A DNA stretch of 64,000 nt from Pelomyxa schiedti (taxonomy: Eukaryota > Protista > Evosea). This document shows positions 7,951 to 51,400 of the stretch, in pieces. The position numbers and the translations under genes were made by a program. The number at the start of each line of letters is the position of its first letter. Position 1 is the stretch's first letter. The DNA lies in assembly GCA_020536535.1 (NCBI GenBank), contig JAHLWZ010000470.1, positions 1 to 64,000 of the forward strand, in the 5' to 3' direction. The notes beneath the pieces are model-generated. The model was not told the DNA's origin. It searched no databases and was given only the letters and a program-made list of their open reading frames with translations.

Positions 7951-10239
7951 CTTGAATGGGGCTATTTGGTAGCAATGAGAGCCCTTCTCATCAACATAGT
8001 CACAAAAATATAGACACCCACTGCCAATATTATCCCGGAAGTGCATTTGTTGTATTGTGCGCCTATGGTTTGCACTGTTGTTGATGCATAGCTCTTCACA
8101 TTTCGCCAAACAGCTATTGTACTCTTGCATTTGCTCAACTGACATCTTTTCTTGTAGGACTCCATGTTTTTTACTTGGTGGATTGCCCATTGCCAATACA
8201 TCCTCCATTGTGTAATGCATGCCATGCTCAGCATAATTCAGGCTTGTGTGTCGTGGAGTTGGAATGATGCAATCACATGACTTCAGTGCCTCACAGATAT
8301 GTACTCTCTGCTTCATGTTCATGAATTGGCATACACTAAATACTTCTTGAATAGCACGTGCTTGACTGAAAGTATTCTCTAGAAACAATGTTGACAGAGG
8401 CTTCATATCATGGAGAATAATATTGTATTCATGTTGTAAGAGGGCAGCAATTTTCTCAAAGCCATTGATTGTCTTTTCTAAACAGAAAAAAGCTGCCTGT
8501 TTGTAAAACCTTTCTTTCCTCTCCTTTGGTTTCTTGGGGGTAACTTTTGTTACAGTCAAAGATTTGAAGTACTCTAGAGCTTCCCTGAGTTGTGGAATTT
8601 TTTCAGATACAGGCTGTTTGTCATCCACAAATAGTGTATGTACTTTACTCACACACTCGAAGTACTTTACTGCCTCTAAAGAGTCTTTTGTGGTGGCAAA
8701 ACTTCGGAATAGAGGAAGCAAGGCATAAATAAGTTCAATTTCCCCATTTGCTTGCTTGTTAGATGGGAATAATGTATCATAGGATGTCAAGCCTCTGGCT
8801 TTAAAGACTTCTTTCCTTGGAGCTACAATCTGATGCATAGACCGCATTGTGAAACATATATCCTTTTCCACATCAGTGCTTAGGTAGTAATTCAAGGTGT
8901 AATTCCGGAATAGCTTCTCCATGTGTGGCACATCATAAACAATTTGCAAGTTAGGTTCAATTTTTCTAAGCTTTTGTTCCAGTGGTGTTGTTTTTCCTTT
9001 GTTGAAGCCATCACTCACAAGCCACAGTGTTGGTATGTCAGCTTCCTTAAGCGCTTTTAACACTTTATTAATACATTTAGAGACAGTTTCATTGTTCATG
9101 CTTTTGATGGGAAACTCAAACAGACAGTGGCGTGCAGAACCATCCCAAGCAACCCAAGCTATTTGCAAGATTTCTTTTGCCAGTTTTTTAGGTATTTTTG
9201 TATATTTTTTCTCCATTTCCTGATTCTGAATATCTGAGATAGGGATTCCTCCCAGAGTTGTTCCTACAAGCATTTTGGAGGTAGTGTCTATGACAAGTCC
9301 CTTCTGGACTTCCACTCCATCAATACAGAGTCCGCCAGGCTTAATTTGATTTTTTAACCCTGTCTTCAGCACTTTTACCCTTTTCCAGATGGACTCCATA
9401 CCAATCCCAAAATCAGGGGAGATTATTCTTTTTTGCAAAGTTGAGACTGCTGGCAATGGTATCCCCATCTTTGTTTTTGATTCTACTAAGTGTCCACCAG
9501 CCTGCCCTCTTTGTTTTTGTGCCTCTGGAATCCCACGGATCAATTCATATCCTTTCTTGTGGCAGTATGTGTACAGTAGCTGAGCCCATTGTGTGATTTC
9601 TGGCATGTATTTGATTTGTCTTCTATCATCAACTCTCATGTACTCCAGAAGCGCCTTAATCAGAACTTCACTGAAAACCAACTTCCCATTCTTGTACTCT
9701 TCTTCCAGGCACACTTCCAAGTTTTGCATGAGGTTTTTCTTTTCTGTTGCCTGCATGCTTTCTAACTTCTTTTTCAGGCTTTCTATTTCCACTATCAACC
9801 GAGTTGATTGTTCTTCAAGATTTTTGCAGTATGTGAACTGGCTAGGTGTCAAGTGACTCTTTGCCACACTCACTCCTGTTTGTTTATAGTAACAGTGCCG
9901 GAGATGCAACAGGTCATATAAATTATTGCACTCTTCACACCTCTTATGCAGGCAGTTTTTCACTCTTATGCAATGAGGGTGAGGTTTCAAAAATGAAAAG
10001 TAAGTTTCTAATTTGTTGTTCAGGATTCCAACTGGTTTTGCCTTGGATATTGAATGCATATTTTCCACTACAGTACAGCCAAAATGTTCCCATGTGAACT
10101 GGAAAAGTTCTGGGGAATCTCTTTTGCATATTCCAGTACAGTAAATCAGGTTGGTTTCAGGTTGTGCCTCCTTTACACTTCTCAGATTCTTTGTATCATC
10201 ACAAGTGGGACAAGCAGCTTGTAAGTGCTGGGGAACCAA
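7789..10239 (-). CDS. P-element/THAP9-like DDE transposase (816-aa open frame; true start unresolved)
   Basis: Motifs in canonical order: LCIDGVEVQKGL (D1), LVSDG (D2), YDVPHMEKLFRN (D-x2-H of the P superfamily), LSTLFLENTFSQAR (catalytic E). Preceded by a coiled coil and a Cys/His-rich N-terminus. Confidence 0.85.
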   Translation of the reverse strand: MVPQHLQAACPTCDDTKNLRSVKEAQPETNLIYCTGICKRDSPELFQFTWEHFGCTVVENMHSISKAKPVGILNNKLETYFSFLKPHPHCIRVKNCLHKRCEECNNLYDLLHLRHCYYKQTGVSVAKSHLTPSQFTYCKNLEEQSTRLIVEIESLKKKLESMQATEKKNLMQNLEVCLEEEYKNGKLVFSEVLIKALLEYMRVDDRRQIKYMPEITQWAQLLYTYCHKKGYELIRGIPEAQKQRGQAGGHLVESKTKMGIPLPAVSTLQKRIISPDFGIGMESIWKRVKVLKTGLKNQIKPGGLCIDGVEVQKGLVIDTTSKMLVGTTLGGIPISDIQNQEMEKKYTKIPKKLAKEILQIAWVAWDGSARHCLFEFPIKSMNNETVSKCINKVLKALKEADIPTLWLVSDGFNKGKTTPLEQKLRKIEPNLQIVYDVPHMEKLFRNYTLNYYLSTDVEKDICFTMRSMHQIVAPRKEVFKARGLTSYDTLFPSNKQANGEIELIYALLPLFRSFATTKDSLEAVKYFECVSKVHTLFVDDKQPVSEKIPQLREALEYFKSLTVTKVTPKKPKERKERFYKQAAFFCLEKTINGFEKIAALLQHEYNIILHDMKPLSTLFLENTFSQARAIQEVFSVCQFMNMKQRVHICEALKSCDCIIPTPRHTSLNYAEHGMHYTMEDVLAMGNPPSKKHGVLQEKMSVEQMQEYNSCLAKCEELCINNSANHRRTIQQMHFRDNIGSGCLYFCDYVDEKGSHCYQIAPFKSEQSYEALRHLIANHPLLSLHLKILVSQTVTYYSQIHICMKKLFPEKGPHKHN

Positions 10240-10904
10240 TGTTGATGCTGAGAGAAGTCTGTGTGCATTAAAGGCATCACTTTTGGGTGAAATCCCACCA
10301 GGGGATGACCCCTGCTTTTGTGCAGTTCATGACCTGCATTGTCTGTGACCAACATAAACTTAAGATTACAAACCACCTTCCCTTTGGGCTGCACGTTCCT
10401 GAATCCTCCTCTGGTTAACACTGGGTGTGTTTAGTTGTGTGTGTATTGGCATTTGCTTTATTTTTTTCAAAAGCACTTCTGCCGAAGAATTTTTTTAGTC
10501 ACCCACCACATTGGGTAACCTTCCAACGAATTCTAGAAGCAGATCCGCCATCACCCGGTGACTAAAAATTCTTTTTAAAGAGAAACTTAATAGAGTGAGG
10601 GGGCCCACTTTTAACTTAAGTTAAAGAAGCAGCCAGAGTGTGAAGAGGTTTTAGCAGAAGGTTGTTGACTCACAATTCCATACCACCAAGGATACAGCCT
10701 AAACCCACAACCTTAATGAAGAATAACCTGCCTAATAAAAAGAGAAAACAACAACACCAACCTACATAAGTTTGGCGCAGCCATAACGGCCGCCAATGTT
10801 AATTGTTGGCACACAAAGCTTGCTAAAAAAAAGTCTATCCTGGTTTTGGGTGTGTGTGAGGGTTGTTGGCTTTGCCTGTTCTGCCTAAACTTTGTGGTTA
10901 ACCC

Positions 10905-11169
10905 CGGATCATCAATACACACTCTTCCAGTAAATCAACCAAATTTGAAGTCAGACCACACATGTTACTCGAGAAAACCTTCAAATTTGGTTGATTTACT
11001 GGAAGAGTGCGTAATATGATGATCGGAAAACTCTCTCACTGCTCCCCCAAATCGCCAAAAATGTACTCCGGTGATTGGTTTTGTGAGAAGATTTCGCTCT
11101 CGATTTGAGAATTGTGGGTTCGTCTAATTCTCTGAACTCTGGCACAGACTCAGAGTTTCCCGATCATCA
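10905..11169. repeat. Cluster of inverted repeats (MITE/foldback-like)
   Basis: Perfect 31-bp IR 10920-10950 / 10979-11009 with a 28-bp spacer; second IR 11017-11034 / 11152-11169 (1 mismatch); GATCATCA core occurs three times. Confidence 0.8.
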
Positions 11170-12061
11170 AAGTCACTCTGGCCTCGTTGTTGTTATTTTA
11201 TCTCTGTAGTGAAATGCACTGGGTGCGCCCAGTGGATAAACTTGTTTTTTGTTGGTTGTTTTTATTTTTCATTCATTATGCCGTTTTTTGACTGAAACGT
11301 CCAATAAAAAACCGGGCATTGCGTGTGATGGGTGTCGGCCGACACCCGTTAGCCAATTTTTACGGTTACCCTTGTTGTTGGGTGTTTGTGTGGCAGTTGT
11401 TTGTTGTCTGTCGCAATTTTGTTTTGGCCAACCAAAACCATTTCTCTGTTCGCTGATGGGTTGGTTGCTCGTGTTTTCTTGTTGGTGTGGTCAAGTGATG
11501 GTTGTTCATTTTTTGCCCAAGAAAACACAAGCAACAAACCCCCTGCACTGTTCTTTTTGTTCATTATTTGCTTTGTATGCTTCAACACCCAAATGCCTCT
11601 CACGAAACTGTTTGTAAGCAACAAAGTGAAAAAAGTGGTTGGGGACCAGTACGCGCGTTGTGGTTGTGTCAGTGGGTGGGGGTGTTGGTTGGGTGGTGCC
11701 AGCACTGTGCATTTACCTGTCTGTTTTTTCTGTGATATGGTTGGCATACCTGGTGTTCCCATTGCACCCCACCATGATTTCACTTCTTGAGGTATCTTAC
11801 CACAGCAGAGGACACCCTTATCACAAAAAGACCAGTTCCCCCTTTAGCAACACATTTGTTGGAGCAGGGTAACGGCGAGGCATATATCACCAAATCTGCT
11901 TGTAAGGAACGGCATTTTGAGATATTTTGTTCGATTTTGGAGATCTAGATGTTTCTCTCAAAGGAATCATCAGCCGCACTTGGACGAGAAAGTAGAGACA
12001 CAACTTTGCACGGGCTCCCCGTGAGAAGAGCAAGTGTACGTAATAAAAAGAAATATTTTTT

Positions 12062-46034: not shown

Positions 46035-46410
46035 CAAGAGTCATAAATAAGAGCCCATTTGAAAATTGAAATGTAAGTTGTTGACTGCTCCTGGCATAGG
46101 GAACCTGCCAGGAACTCCATTGGTGAACTTCTTCCAGGTCCACACAGATTCTGTTTTGAGAATTGCCTCCCGGCTTCCCGTCCTTTTCTTCTTTCTTATT
46201 CCACGAACATTACCACAGAGTCTCGAATGTCAGAATAAATGACATTACCCTTGGCCTTGCTGTTTTACTACTGAAAACCCATCACCTAAATCAAACAAAA
46301 AAGTCTTTCTCTTTTCCCTGAAACGGCGTTGTCAACGTCGTCAGTTACCGGCGAAGAAAAACTGCAGGAAACACACAAGAAAAAAAAGAAAAAAAAACGC
46401 ACGAGAGGCG

Positions 46411-48281
46411 ATGGGGTGCTGTTGTTGCTGTTGTTCGGGAGGCAGAGATCGTCGTAACTTCCGCGGAAGTTACTACCACAAGAACGTGTGCTGCGGGAAA
46501 CGAACTGTCAAGAGGGGCGAGTGTTGCGCGACATGGAATTTTTCCGGCGAGTACTCGGTACACGAGGGTCCTGTGCGCCTGTGGATGTTTTGCAGGTTTT
46601 TTGGTTTTTTCTCTTTTTTTCCCTCTAAGCTTTGAAATTTGAGAATACCAAGGTCTAGCTTGAGACTAACGGTTTTTTTTTGTTAAGCGAGATAGCGTTT
46701 TTGGATAGGCACACTGCTGGTCCCAATCAGTACTTGATTGTAAAAAGGAGAGACGGTGTTCAAGAAAATATCCCTGGTCCCTACACAATGTTTATGTAAG
46801 AGATTCGTGAAAACTTTCTAGAGCTTATCTGTGGCTAGGGATCCTGTTATACACGTATCGGTGGAACTGAAGGATGCAATTGGTACTTACAATCAACTGT
46901 GATTTTACCTTGATGAAATCTCTTTCAACAATCCAGCACTGGATGCTTCTGAACTTTGTGTTATATACGTTCAACCAACTCCAGGCGAGGGAGCTGCTTC
47001 GGCATCCGCATCTAGTGCAGTGGAGATGACAGCTGCATCTGATCACAAAAAGCATAAGCATAAGCACAAGGACGATCATAAGGAAGACAACTTACCCCCA
47101 TCAGGTTGTAAAATGTTCACCTTTTGCAAAAGTTTACAACACAAAAGGGACAGGCTTGCGTCGTCTCATTCGAGGTCCTGATAACTTCATTCCTACAAGT
47201 ACAGAACGCGCACATCAATTTGAGTGGTCACCTGCCGACCCAGTTGCTAAGGGCAAAGTGACCTTCCAGAAACTTAAATTAATTGTACAAAGTCTGAAGT
47301 GCATAGTAGAGGGAGTCCGAACCACAGATAAAATTTTATTAGAAGTATGCTGTTCTTCAGCCTTCCTTGTCTTATGTTTATTACAGGTAGAAGTTATGAT
47401 TTTTTGGGACATTATCGATGTAGAACGTATGCTTGATAACACAAGCGACCCTGTTGGTGAAATTAGAGCTGCCGCCTCTGCGGATATAATATCTTTTGGC
47501 TCAAATCATAGGCACATTTCTAACCGAAAGACTAAAATAAGTCTGACTTTTTTTTTGTTAAGTTATGAGAGCTTGCTTTCCAATACACCTCAATTGAGTG
47601 AACTTGATCCTTATAAAATGTTGATGACCCGATCTTCTGCCTTTGGTGTTGCTATTCGCAAAGGTGAGCAGTTCCTGTGGCAGGAAAGAAGCTAACATTC
47701 TTCCACAAAACTACCAGTTATATACAACGGATACCGCGCAGAGTCGGGTGTGCAACGAGTTCATGATCAGGCGCTTGAAGCAAGAGCAAAGCTAAAAGCA
47801 GAACATGAGCATAATGAGCACGAGCAAGCACAAATTGATCTTAAGCTGAAACATGAATTCGAGCGAACAAAGAGAGAGGCGGAACATAATGCCCTTATGA
47901 GGGAAGAAGAAGCAATTCAAGAAAAGGTTTGCCAGAGCCTAGACAAAGAAACCGCACTAACGAAAACCACAGTTCAAGCTGGAAATGGAAAAGGTCAAGC
48001 ACTCCACAACACTGCAGCTACAGCAACAAGAAATCGAAGTGGAGCAGCTGTCACGCCAAAAGAAGCACGAAACCGACTTGCTGTTCTACAAAGAACTCGC
48101 CAGCATCGGCGTGGATGTCACGCAGTACCTCATAGCCACAAGCCAGAAGCCGGCCAACCAACTGGTCCGCATTGACCAGTCCTCCGACGGCCCGGGAACC
48201 CACGTCCACCTTCACGACCCACAATCTTCCACCAATTCCACGTCCTCGTCATCCCCACCAAAAGTTCCCAAGCGCAGCTAA
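46411..48281 (+). CDS. Major-vault-protein-related / SPFH-like protein with N-terminal MGCCCCCC
   Basis: Spliced reading: MGCCCCCC...HEGPVRLW...PNQYLIVKRRDGVQENIPGP...RRLIRGPDNFIP...HQFEWS...VRTTDKILLEVEVMIFWDIIDVERMLDNTSDPVGEI...VIYNGYRA...HDQALEARAKL, then a coiled coil, then GVDVTQYLIA. Confidence 0.75.
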
Positions 48282-48417
48282 ACCTCACACCCCTTGTATC
48301 TAACCAAATTTCCAATAAACAAAAAAAACCAAACCTATTTTTTCTTTCGTTCCACACCTGCTCTTTCACCGAAACTCACAACAAACAATAAAACAAAAAC
48401 AAACAAACGCGAGGAGG

Positions 48418-51400
48418 ATGCAGCAGCAAGGAGGCGGGATCTTGTCGTTTTCACTGGCAGCTAGGGAGTACGAGTCATACGTGGGGTCGCGGGAGTGCGT
48501 TGGGGAGGTGCTGGGGCCGCCGGGGCACAGGCTCGTGGAGGCGGTGTCCGCGGGGGGCCCGCTGCTGACGAGGTCGCAGCAAGCTGACCTCATAAAGGCA
48601 ACTGCTCCTTGTGTGGAAGAGGTTGTTTCAGTTTCGGTTTTTTTTTTGCTTTTTTTTTTAAGTATTAAAATTAAACAAAAGAAGTAATGGTCATAGCTAG
48701 GTTGCCAGGATCAATGAGCTAGTTTTTGTTATTGGGGGTCTGGATGCAAAATCCCGGGGATTGCTCTCCCAGCTGTTGTCACTATTGTGGCGTGCTTTAC
48801 ATCGCGTGGACAATTTCAGCCAAACGAACCTCCAGTCGTTCACACACAAACCAAAGCCCAATAAAAACGATACTGCTCTTTTCCGCAGGTTGCGAGAAAT
48901 TGTGTGTACCCACAATCCAATCTCTATGCAATATGCCTGACTTCTGTTAACAAGGAGTGTGCATTCGCTCCCGCACTTTTCTCTTCCGCTCCTGTTCACA
49001 GTGCCGAGCATGCCATTGGCGTTCTAATTGAAAACTATGATCTACTTCCCATGGAAGATCACTCACAATCTCCCTATGTGCTGCACCCCAGTTTTGCACT
49101 GGGAGGTGAGGAAGCAAGCGTTTATCTAGATGACGCTTGGTCTGACCTTGATGTAACTGCAAAAACTTTCACATAAATTACTGTTCTTTACTGACAATTT
49201 TTTTACTACCAATAGGTACAAGTGGACCAACAAGAAAAGGCACTAAAGCACGCAAACACCCTTCTTGTTAAAAATAAGTCAGCAAGGCACAACAGTGACC
49301 TTCATGAGATTCATACTGCTCTCGCATTTGCTTCGACCAAGTTGTCTGATGTCCGGGTAACTTGGAACGCTCTCAGAGACCACATGCTGAAGACTTCTAA
49401 TGGTACAAACATCGTGCCATACTTTTTTACTCACCTCTTTTAGACTACCGTAAGATTGTAATTAAGAGTCAAAAGGATATTGGCAATTTTTTGCAGAATT
49501 ATACCAGACAAGTCGAGCAACAGCAACATGTCTTTCAAGCCCAAATTGAGGTTTGTGAGCCCCCTGTGTGATTGCATATGAAATCTTTTCCACCAGGCAC
49601 ACCTGAACCATGAAAGGGAGCTACGACTAGCTTTAGAAAATGCAACTTCTCAACAGCTCTCTCCTCCAGTTTCTACTTGCCAAAATGAACATACACCTTC
49701 CAGTAGTCCTACTGAGTCAATAAGACGAGTTGCCTCACTGGAAAAGGATGCCAAATTCATGAAAGCTTCACTTCAGCACCACAAAACGAAACTCGAACAA
49801 ACAAAGAAGATAAACACGGACCTGAAAATCACACTCGCCAAACAGCACAAAATCATCAGGAAACTGCAGAGCCAAAGTGGAGTTCCTAAAGACGGTGGGC
49901 ATGGAAACAGAACGACGTCAGAGATCGGGGAATCTACCACTGGCAATCAACAGTCTGGTGCTCCCGACATACAAAATACCAAAGGCGACCACGCCGATTC
50001 TTACGGCAATGCTCTGGCACATCAGCTTGCACAATCTGAACAAGAGAAATCCACCATGTCAAAACAACTATCAGAGGTCACCTGCTCCCTTTCCACTGTA
50101 CTGTCACAGTTGAATGCTGCCAAAGACGCAATGAATGAAAAGGAACAAGTCATTCTCAATTCAATCAAAGATAAAGACGCATTGCTTACAAAATTATCAC
50201 ATATGCAAAAGGAAAACAATAAACTCTCCAAGCTACTGGAAGAGAGAACTGAAATTAACACTTCAGCTACCACTCTCAACAACAAGCTACAAAATGAAAT
50301 TACTTCTTTACAACGTGCACTCCGTGACGCGAAAGCGGAAGTCGTAGAGGCAACATCAGAACGCCAAAGCAATCTCCAGCAATTTTCTAAGCTCGAGTCA
50401 TACGCCCATAAACTTGAATCGCAAATTGAACAGGCTGATGCAGAGACAAAACATTATCAAACAGTACAACAACAACAACTTTCGCGGATACACCAACTTG
50501 AAACTGCTCTCTCTACTTCTCAAGCTGAAAAAAGTGACCTCACAGAATCTCTTCAGCAGCAGCAATCATCCGCACAAACTCTGCAAGACCATCTGGTAAT
50601 AGCAGAGCAAGCCCTTTCAGAGAAAGTCTCAACATTGCAAAATACTTCCGCAGAGTTGGAATCGGTCAAAGCTGAACTTCAGCAGACTCAAGACGAACTT
50701 GCAAGGGTAAAAGAAAAGCATCGTGCAGCTATTGAATATGGCAAACAAATGCGCATGATGTTACAAGAGCAGACCAACTACTTCCCTCGTGCTAATTCTG
50801 GGGACGGACAAGGAATGCCCAGTGGCTACCAAGAACCGCCGCTGGCAAAGTCAACACCCTTAGCGGATCGCTTTCACCAATGTAATAAAGATTACCAAGA
50901 AACAGAACAACAAATAGCTACCCTTAAAGAGACAATAAAACAGCTTCAGGAAGAGAAAAATGACCTGACTGCACAAGCCCAGGAGCAGCAACAACTGAAC
51001 ACTACCGCCACTGCTGAAACTGAAAAACTTTCCTTGCACCACAAGCAATCCAAAGAAAAATGGCAGCAATCACAACAAGAATTGCAGGCCCGATTTGAAG
51101 AGCAACAAATTTCTCACATGGCACAACTCCAAACTCTGCAAGCTGAGTTAGACAATAGCAAGTCAAAACTCACGGAATGCACAACAAAAATACGTAACTA
51201 CGAAGAACAACTTGCAAAACTTCAGGAGGAAATGTCCTCTTTCCAGATTTCTCGCAAAAACGAATACTCCTCTCAACAGCAGACAATAACCCAGTTACAA
51301 ACTCAACTCCGCGATCTCAAGCAACAATTTTCTGCCACTGTTACTCCTTTACAAGAGGAATTACAGGAGTACCAGTCTGCATATCAGCATGAGCACACTC

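Follow-up and report, generated by a model that had tools for sequence, protein, structure and literature searches.

A Pelomyxa schiedti member of an unnamed SPFH-superfamily protein family with major vault protein-type repeats and a predicted N-terminal lipid anchor

Here, we describe a gene of the amoeboid protist Pelomyxa schiedti (Evosea), found in a window of 64,000 nucleotides (nt) (GenBank assembly GCA_020536535.1, contig JAHLWZ010000470.1, positions 1 to 64,000 of the forward strand). The region 46411-48281 of the window is a real, expressed gene, and its product, referred to below as the window protein, is an SPFH-superfamily protein with repeats of the type known from the major vault protein (MVP), belonging to a distinct family that has no name. 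Its architecture almost certainly comprises an N-terminal anchor motif, three MVP-type repeats, an SPFH domain, one long helix and a short C-terminal helix. The N-terminus is probably acylated, with a myristoyl group on Gly2 and palmitoyl groups on cysteines, which is predicted because the sequence pattern is present and recurs in relatives. Overall, it appears fairly likely that the protein is a scaffold with a lipid anchor whose subunits assemble into a ring or dome at the cytosolic side of a membrane. Because all the solved SPFH and MVP proteins form such assemblies, a membrane-bound cage may be proposed by analogy, although we regard the chances for and against cage formation as evenly balanced. 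A role in organising a membrane domain is something that we only infer.

The DNA of the window is eukaryotic and its introns are very short; the exon model was obtained by following the reading frame between GT/GC-AG splice sites. The ATG whose A is position 46411 is the first in-frame start downstream of an in-frame stop, the stop codon lies at 48279-48281, and the introns of the nine-exon gene are 42-92 nt long (n=8). The original prediction, made from the letters alone, had placed a protein at 46411-48281, and these coordinates coincide exactly with the start and the stop of the coding region. The features it had named are all present there as well, that is, the start MGCCCCCC (in full, MGCCCCCCSGG), the motifs HEGP (residues 51-54), IPGP (residues 90-93) and IRGP (residues 175-178), and a long helix ending in GVDVTQYL. 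An alpha/beta domain comes after the GP motifs and is followed by the long helical stretch, and the helical part terminates in ...ELASIGVDVTQYL.

The locus is present in four single-cell RNA-seq runs (X1-X4) of one study labelled 'protist metagenome', whose contigs were aligned with positions 46100-48700. All eight intron joints were seen at the boundaries of the model when the contigs of runs X1-X3 were combined. The joints of introns 4, 5, 7 and 8 occur at depth 10-49 in two to four runs and those of introns 2 and 3 in X1 and X3, while the joint between exon 1 and exon 2 is confined to two contigs of run X1, with a depth of about 4.5. It had been set down beforehand that the prediction would fall if the MGCCCCCC exon were not spliced to the exons downstream; the RNA does join this exon to exon 2, although the evidence from X1 is thin.

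Among public proteins, the closest is 'hypothetical protein Pelo_7456 [Pelomyxa schiedti]' (P0151, 483 amino acids), encoded on P. schiedti contig JAHLWZ010000590.1 at 10001-11856 (locus L001). It shares 81.8% identity with the window protein over 468 aligned residues, begins with MGCCCC, an N-terminus of the same kind, and is encoded by nine exons with identical intron phases. Comparison of the two whole genes gave proportions of nonsynonymous (pN) and synonymous (pS) differences of 0.11 and 0.73, respectively, the latter being saturated. In exon 1 alone, the values are 0.05 for pN and 0.59 for pS, and therefore the N-terminal exon is under purifying selection as protein. No synteny was found between the window and the Pelo_7456 locus: the flanks share nothing, the match consists of the gene alone, and the neighbours of Pelo_7456 (Sdh_cyt, EF-hand, YEATS and B9-C2 genes) are entirely unlike those of the window gene. 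Since the synonymous sites are saturated and the flanks are unrelated, the two genes are, as judged from their sequences, old paralogues or derived from distant strains.

One RNA contig of run X2 (1434 nt; window 46657-47102) retains introns 2 and 3, but introns 4-8 are spliced out. An open reading frame called on this contig in prokaryote style, from a GTG and with an intron TGA read as W, is the public protein P0001, which represents the window's own product from residue 97, as an allele with intron 3 retained. In the analyses below, P0151 (full length) and P0001 (from residue 97) were used as stand-ins for the spliced window protein of 481 amino acids.

AlphaFold2 was run on P0151 with an alignment of 123 sequences, and the model has a mean predicted local distance difference test score (pLDDT) of 84.7 and a predicted template modelling score (pTM) of 0.67. 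In this model, residues 1-20 are disordered, strands occupy residues 21-122, a short helix and a disordered insertion occupy residues 123-176, and strands appear again in residues 177-217. These are followed by an alpha/beta domain (218-323), a long helix (324-428, pLDDT 82-98), a short helix (433-440) and a disordered tail. In the Foldseek search against the PDB, ranks 1-12 are all MVP (E-values from 2e-12 to 4e-9), followed by erlin, stomatin, HflK/C, flotillin, prohibitin and QmcA (about 1e-6 to 1e-4). VIA-align places model residues 27-444 on MVP residues 272/322-771, i.e., from repeat R6/R7 onward, with Z-scores of 15.4-15.7. For the canonical SPFH proteins, the alignment starts only at model residue 107-109 (Z 12-14), and therefore the protein has about two extra beta domains compared with ordinary SPFH proteins. 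The alpha/beta domain has the SPFH fold, as it superposes on the SPFH domains of mouse and Pyrococcus stomatin with Z 13.9-14.0 and a root-mean-square deviation of 1.8-2.2 A over 106-109 residues. The long helix comes directly after the SPFH domain in the model, and it aligns with the cap helix of MVP as well as with the helices of prohibitin, HflK, erlin and flotillin. Thus, the succession of tandem MVP repeats, shoulder and cap helix is found in the predicted model of P0151.

The beta region was also modelled alone (P0151 residues 12-222, pLDDT 86.7). Ranks 1-16 of its Foldseek matches are all MVP, including the crystal structures of repeats R1-R7, and the next match has an E-value of about 0.8. 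In a search independent of Foldseek, the sole match over all three units is MVP R1-R3 (Z 6.9 and 6.7, 133-141 residues), while the other matches span one unit with Z of at most 5.5.

Does the protein then belong to the MVP family? Pfam found no match at E <=10 in the exon pieces of the window, as these are too short and too divergent. In P0001 and P0151, it found neither Vault (PF01505) nor Vault_2, Vault_3 or Vault_4 at E <=1, and MVP_shoulder (PF11978) and the flotillin family are likewise absent from the results for these two proteins. Band_7 (PF01145) is found in both at 15.2-15.4 bits (E 0.02), which is below its curated cut-off of 23.6 bits. Since Vault and MVP_shoulder are missing and Band_7 stays sub-threshold, the window protein is not a member of the MVP family by sequence; on the same evidence it is not an MVP orthologue, and 'shortened MVP' is not an apt name. 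Consequently, the original prediction of a shortened MVP relative holds for the order of the fold, as seen with Foldseek and VIA-align, but not for family membership as judged by Pfam. The likeness to MVP repeats and to the SPFH fold that it expected is supported at the fold level on the P0151 model, by the MVP ranks and the stomatin superposition given above, whereas the expected recognition by MVP repeat, MVP shoulder and Band_7 profiles went no further than the sub-threshold Band_7 match.

Among 109 relatives searched with Pfam at E <=0.01, Band_7 is found in 32, Vault_3 in five and MVP_shoulder in one (E 0.007). For example, P0006 exceeds the Band_7 cut-off with 27.2 bits, and P0144, a relative of 809 amino acids, carries a Vault_3 repeat (E 2.2e-11) upstream of the shared core, its residues 377-791 corresponding to the family core plus the C-terminal motif. 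When the family profile was searched against the PDB sequences, the top match was QmcA (E 0.011), followed by MVP (0.1-0.27) and HflK (0.48), and nothing else related was found. The alignment of this profile with MVP is collinear through the repeats and the shoulder (MVP residues 348-602). The phmmer search of the exons 5-7 piece against the PDB gave a single chance match, to a PCI domain, which runs through the translated intron.

Could the protein instead be an ordinary scaffold of the stomatin or flotillin type, whose beta units are an elaborated SPFH1 and whose likeness to MVP is a generic arrangement of beta-hairpins without homology? The predominance of Band_7 over MVP_shoulder among the relatives would agree with this, as would the fact that stomatin gives the best superposition for the SPFH domain; the repeat region alone reaches no more than Z 6.9, and its single units also resemble cupin-like sheets (Z 4-5.5). 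However, the alignment with canonical SPFH proteins leaves two units unmatched, the 16 best Foldseek matches of the beta region are all MVP, and the Vault_3 matches of the five relatives reach 2e-11. In addition, related ESM Atlas clusters carry Vault_3 together with Vault_4, and the collinearity of the profile with MVP extends over repeats and shoulder alike. An ordinary SPFH scaffold is therefore rather improbable, and units of the MVP type are the preferred explanation for the beta region.

The N-terminus was compared with the myristoylation pattern G-{EDRKHPFYW}-x-x-[STAGCN]-{P}. MGCCCCCC fits this pattern, with a small residue at position 3 and a small residue or Cys at position 6, and the six adjacent cysteines are followed by a basic stretch. 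The MG-Cys motif is conserved in P0151 and in P0083 of Mastigamoeba. The pattern is present at the N-terminus of 11 of the 96 full-length cluster representatives, eight of these 11 having Cys at positions 3-10, and in four further representatives a hydrophobic N-terminal segment takes its place. A rough tree of the core, drawn without support values, shows acylation motifs in at least four places. One clade with such motifs is that of the Archamoebae (the window gene, P0151 and P0083), and a separate one holds the second Pelomyxa paralogue.

What could such a protein build? Co-translational myristoylation and then palmitoylation would attach the N-terminus to a membrane at its cytosolic face. 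The subunits may pack side by side through the SPFH domain and the long helix to give a ring or dome, in which all the N-termini would face the membrane and the C-termini would close the apex, while the three repeats would lengthen the wall of the cage. The product would resemble a short half-vault standing on a membrane patch, with the membrane at the position of the vault's second half. N-terminal membrane attachment has been described as the unifying trait of SPFH cages (PMC13100048).

Alternatively, the protein could form a soluble miniature vault, that is, a closed cage free in the cytosol, built from a pair of short halves that are joined through their N-terminal repeats, with the Cys run left unmodified, acylated transiently, or used for redox or metal binding. 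This would be consistent with MVP as the best structural match, with the N-termini of the vault meeting at its waist (PMC13100048), with the lack of an anchor in most relatives and with the additional Cys pairs of the window protein at residues 27-28 and 39-40. However, the MG start with adjoining Cys is conserved throughout Archamoebae and appears again in several branches, hydrophobic N-terminal segments occupy the same place in other members, and residues 1-20 are disordered and basic, like known acylated anchors. We consequently consider a soluble vault unlikely. Even less likely is a non-cage adaptor, i.e., a membrane-tethered monomer or dimer that would recruit partners via the long helix and the disordered tail, since the long disordered insertion and the disordered tail of the model speak for it, but every solved protein in which an SPFH domain is combined with a long helix assembles into large rings or cages (PDB entries; PMC13100048) and the C-terminal motif that follows the helix shows strong conservation, as expected of an assembly contact.

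It should be noted that several points weigh against the lipid-anchored scaffold, which is nevertheless the reading we prefer. No obvious anchor is present in 81 of the 96 full-length relatives, and therefore membrane tethering is not family-wide. The core tree carries no support values, and the exon 1 joint depends on the low-depth contigs of the single run X1. The predicted structure is that of the 82%-identical homologue P0151 and not of the window protein. For the repeat region alone, Z 6.9 is modest and lies in the range where chance arrangements occur, and the window protein itself has no Pfam match to Vault or MVP_shoulder and none to Band_7 above the threshold.

The protein is not a one-off, and it belongs to a large and widespread family. 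Since the window protein is read across introns, a stop-free piece (window:47150-47692, exons 5-7, reading through two short introns) was used as the search query. An exhaustive search of the 1.84 billion cluster representatives with HMMER yielded 177 proteins at E <=1e-3, 16 of which are at E <=1e-10. A word-index protein search returned two matches with P0001 and three with the family alignment, probably being swamped by low-complexity words. The named members include proteins of Mastigamoeba balamuthi, a second P. schiedti gene (Pelo_10232), the green algae Cymbomonas and Dolichomastix, Rhodelphis, the choanoflagellate Salpingoeca kvevrii, the dinoflagellate Polykrikos and the euglenid Ploeotia. 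All the members are annotated in the databases as 'hypothetical' or 'Band 7 domain-containing'. There is no curated family name in Pfam, NCBIfam or PHROGs and no NCBIfam or PHROGs model, and six family members compared with PHROGs gave no match.

In an alignment of about 100 relatives, the GP motifs HEGP, IPGP and IRGP are nearly invariant columns, and therefore they are not due to chance. The family consensus consists of three GP-centred units, a highly conserved core (...EWxHxFSWHG...VRTxDDAxLTVKLMIF...MLDxTxDP...) and the C-terminal GVDLTxYLVA...PD. The near-invariant residues of unit 3 are R178, G183, P184, E193, H196, F198 and W200 in the numbering of P0151.

Some members have an MshEN domain or an MshEN-like N-terminus ahead of the repeats and the SPFH core (P0004, P0035, P0046, P0065 and P0072). 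This branch, in which MshEN is of the type that binds cyclic di-GMP, is monophyletic, and Pfam confirms the domain in three members. Such an N-terminus suggests bacterial membership, and the branch is probably bacterial; an ESM Atlas cluster of the MshEN kind comes mostly from Planctomycetota. The nearest ESM Atlas clusters, of 400-870 amino acids, carry Band_7, MVP_shoulder, Vault_3 and Vault_4 and come from eukaryotes, bacteria and phages. For several clusters of 520-870 amino acids in which MVP_shoulder, Vault_3 and Vault_4 occur, the label is mostly Uroviricota (tailed phages).

Compared with MVP (PDB 4V60, 9BW5 and 9R86), the window protein has the same order of beta repeats, SPFH-like shoulder, long cap helix and short C-terminal element. 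However, MVP has nine repeats in about 860 amino acids (850-900), as against three in 481, and its cap helix has about 155 residues, as against about 105. Furthermore, MVP has no anchor and its N-terminal end joins the second half-vault, whereas the window protein has an acylation motif at its N-terminus. Flotillin-2/reggie-1, stomatin, prohibitin, erlin, HflK/C and QmcA share with it an SPFH domain with a long helix and a membrane attachment N-terminal to SPFH, which for the window protein is predicted. Flotillin-2 is myristoylated at Gly2 and palmitoylated. Unlike the window protein, these SPFH cage proteins do not have the two extra beta repeat domains, and the flotillin-type C-terminal region is in turn missing from the window protein.

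Short MVP-like proteins are already known, while the family itself is unstudied. Two proteins of Naegleria gruberi, D2W0Z9 (530 amino acids) and D2V5B9 (559 amino acids), have been described (Daly et al., 2012; PMC3595041). Like the window protein, they are eukaryotic, more than 300 residues shorter than MVP, have fewer repeats with a shoulder and a helix, and are predicted to have an MVP-like fold (PMC3595041). They differ, in a comparison by description only, in that Pfam MVP_shoulder is annotated, in that they are treated as candidate vault formers, and in that no lipid anchor or membrane form is discussed (PMC3595041). The ESM Atlas clusters named 'SPFH domain / Band 7 family / Major Vault Protein Repeat domain-containing protein' are also similar, with 400-550 amino acids, template modelling scores of 0.47-0.54, a combination of Band_7, Vault_3 and MVP_shoulder, and members in both eukaryotes and bacteria. 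However, their annotation is automatic only, and the window protein is too divergent for those Pfam models. Bacterial MVP homologues with Band 7 similarity were reported in a 2019 preprint. In the literature search, no paper was found on lipid-anchored short MVP-like proteins or describing the family of the window protein.

Vaults are abundant and conserved, and their relation to membrane-bound SPFH cages is actively discussed. It is a tentative and rather doubtful possibility that the family is the link missing between SPFH half-cages anchored to membranes and the free vault, namely a lipid-anchored half-vault with its N-terminal repeats on the membrane. If this were true, the vault would have arisen from such a half-vault as the repeats multiplied, the anchor was lost and two halves paired head to head. 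A family that joins MVP-type repeats, SPFH, a cap-like helix and, in several branches, a lipid or hydrophobic anchor would make the relation between vaults and membrane-bound SPFH cages directly testable, and it would offer structural biologists a smaller and simpler relative of the vault.

The coordinates of the gene and of the parts of the protein are listed in Table 1.

Table 1. Gene structure and predicted parts of the window protein, in positions of the window.
Feature	Position	Strand	Basis or remark
Whole coding region	46411..48281	+	9 exons, 481 codons and stop; frame-following and splice-site model, RNA joints, exon structure of homologue
Exons 1-9	46411-46595, 46688-46795, 46839-46882, 46937-47104, 47148-47344, 47387-47511, 47563-47663, 47718-47926, 47973-48281	+	
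Intron 6, GC-AG, 51 nt	47512..47562	+	Joint in RNA runs X2 and X3; joint in X1 with one substituted letter
N-terminal MGCCCCCCSGG, predicted Gly2 N-myristoylation and S-palmitoylation of the six-Cys run	46411..46443	+	Sequence pattern; model pLDDT <50, disordered
Basic linker RDRRNFRGSYY, between acylation motif and first beta unit	46444..46476	+	Conserved in the subfamily P0083, P0042, P0018, P0114, P0070
Beta unit 1, residues 23-66, ends at about HEGP, spans intron 1	46477..46700	+	Strands in P0151 model with pLDDT >95; matches MVP repeats
Beta unit 2, residues 67-124, with IPGP, spans introns 2 and 3	46701..46971	+	Model; aligned with MVP repeats
Short helix and disordered Ala/Ser-rich and His/Lys-rich insertion, residues 125-171, spans intron 4	46972..47155	+	pLDDT about 50
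Beta unit 3, residues 172-212, with IRGP; corresponds to MVP R9 and to SPFH1 of canonical SPFH proteins	47156..47278	+	Model
SPFH (shoulder-like) alpha/beta domain, residues 213-318, spans introns 5, 6 and 7	47279..47743	+	Stomatin superposition; Band_7 E 0.02
Single long alpha-helix of about 105 residues (319-423), equivalent of cap helix/coiled coil, spans intron 8	47744..48104	+	DSSP helix 324-428 of P0151
C-terminal motif GVDVTQYLIAT, short helix after the long helix	48108..48140	+	Family consensus GVDLTxYLVA...PD; GV(D/N)VTQYL in window protein/P0151
Disordered Ser/Pro-rich C-terminal tail, starting ...LVRID (possible short strand)	48141..48278	+	pLDDT 46-63; weakly conserved compared with P0151

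A resemblance of the C-terminal motif GVDLTxYL to the C-terminal end of flotillin-2 was considered and rejected, as the profile search found no flotillin or MVP chain, only chance matches to RecA. The motif has no counterpart among the PDB sequences in that profile search, and the phmmer search of the C-terminal part against the PDB gave no match either.

The insertion between beta units 2 and 3 (...HKKHKHKHKDDHKED...) is unlike that of P0151 in both length and sequence, and it is missing from most relatives.

The RNA contigs differ from the window at positions 46996, 47790, 47881 and 48251, and these could be strain differences, alleles or editing. Among them, the A>G difference at 47790 changes Lys to Arg and is found in X1-X3, the runs that hold most of the gene, while X4 has the letter of the window. 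Upstream of the gene, an X3 contig at 46100-46250 shows 7 mismatches in 151 nt and may be a paralogous or neighbouring transcript.

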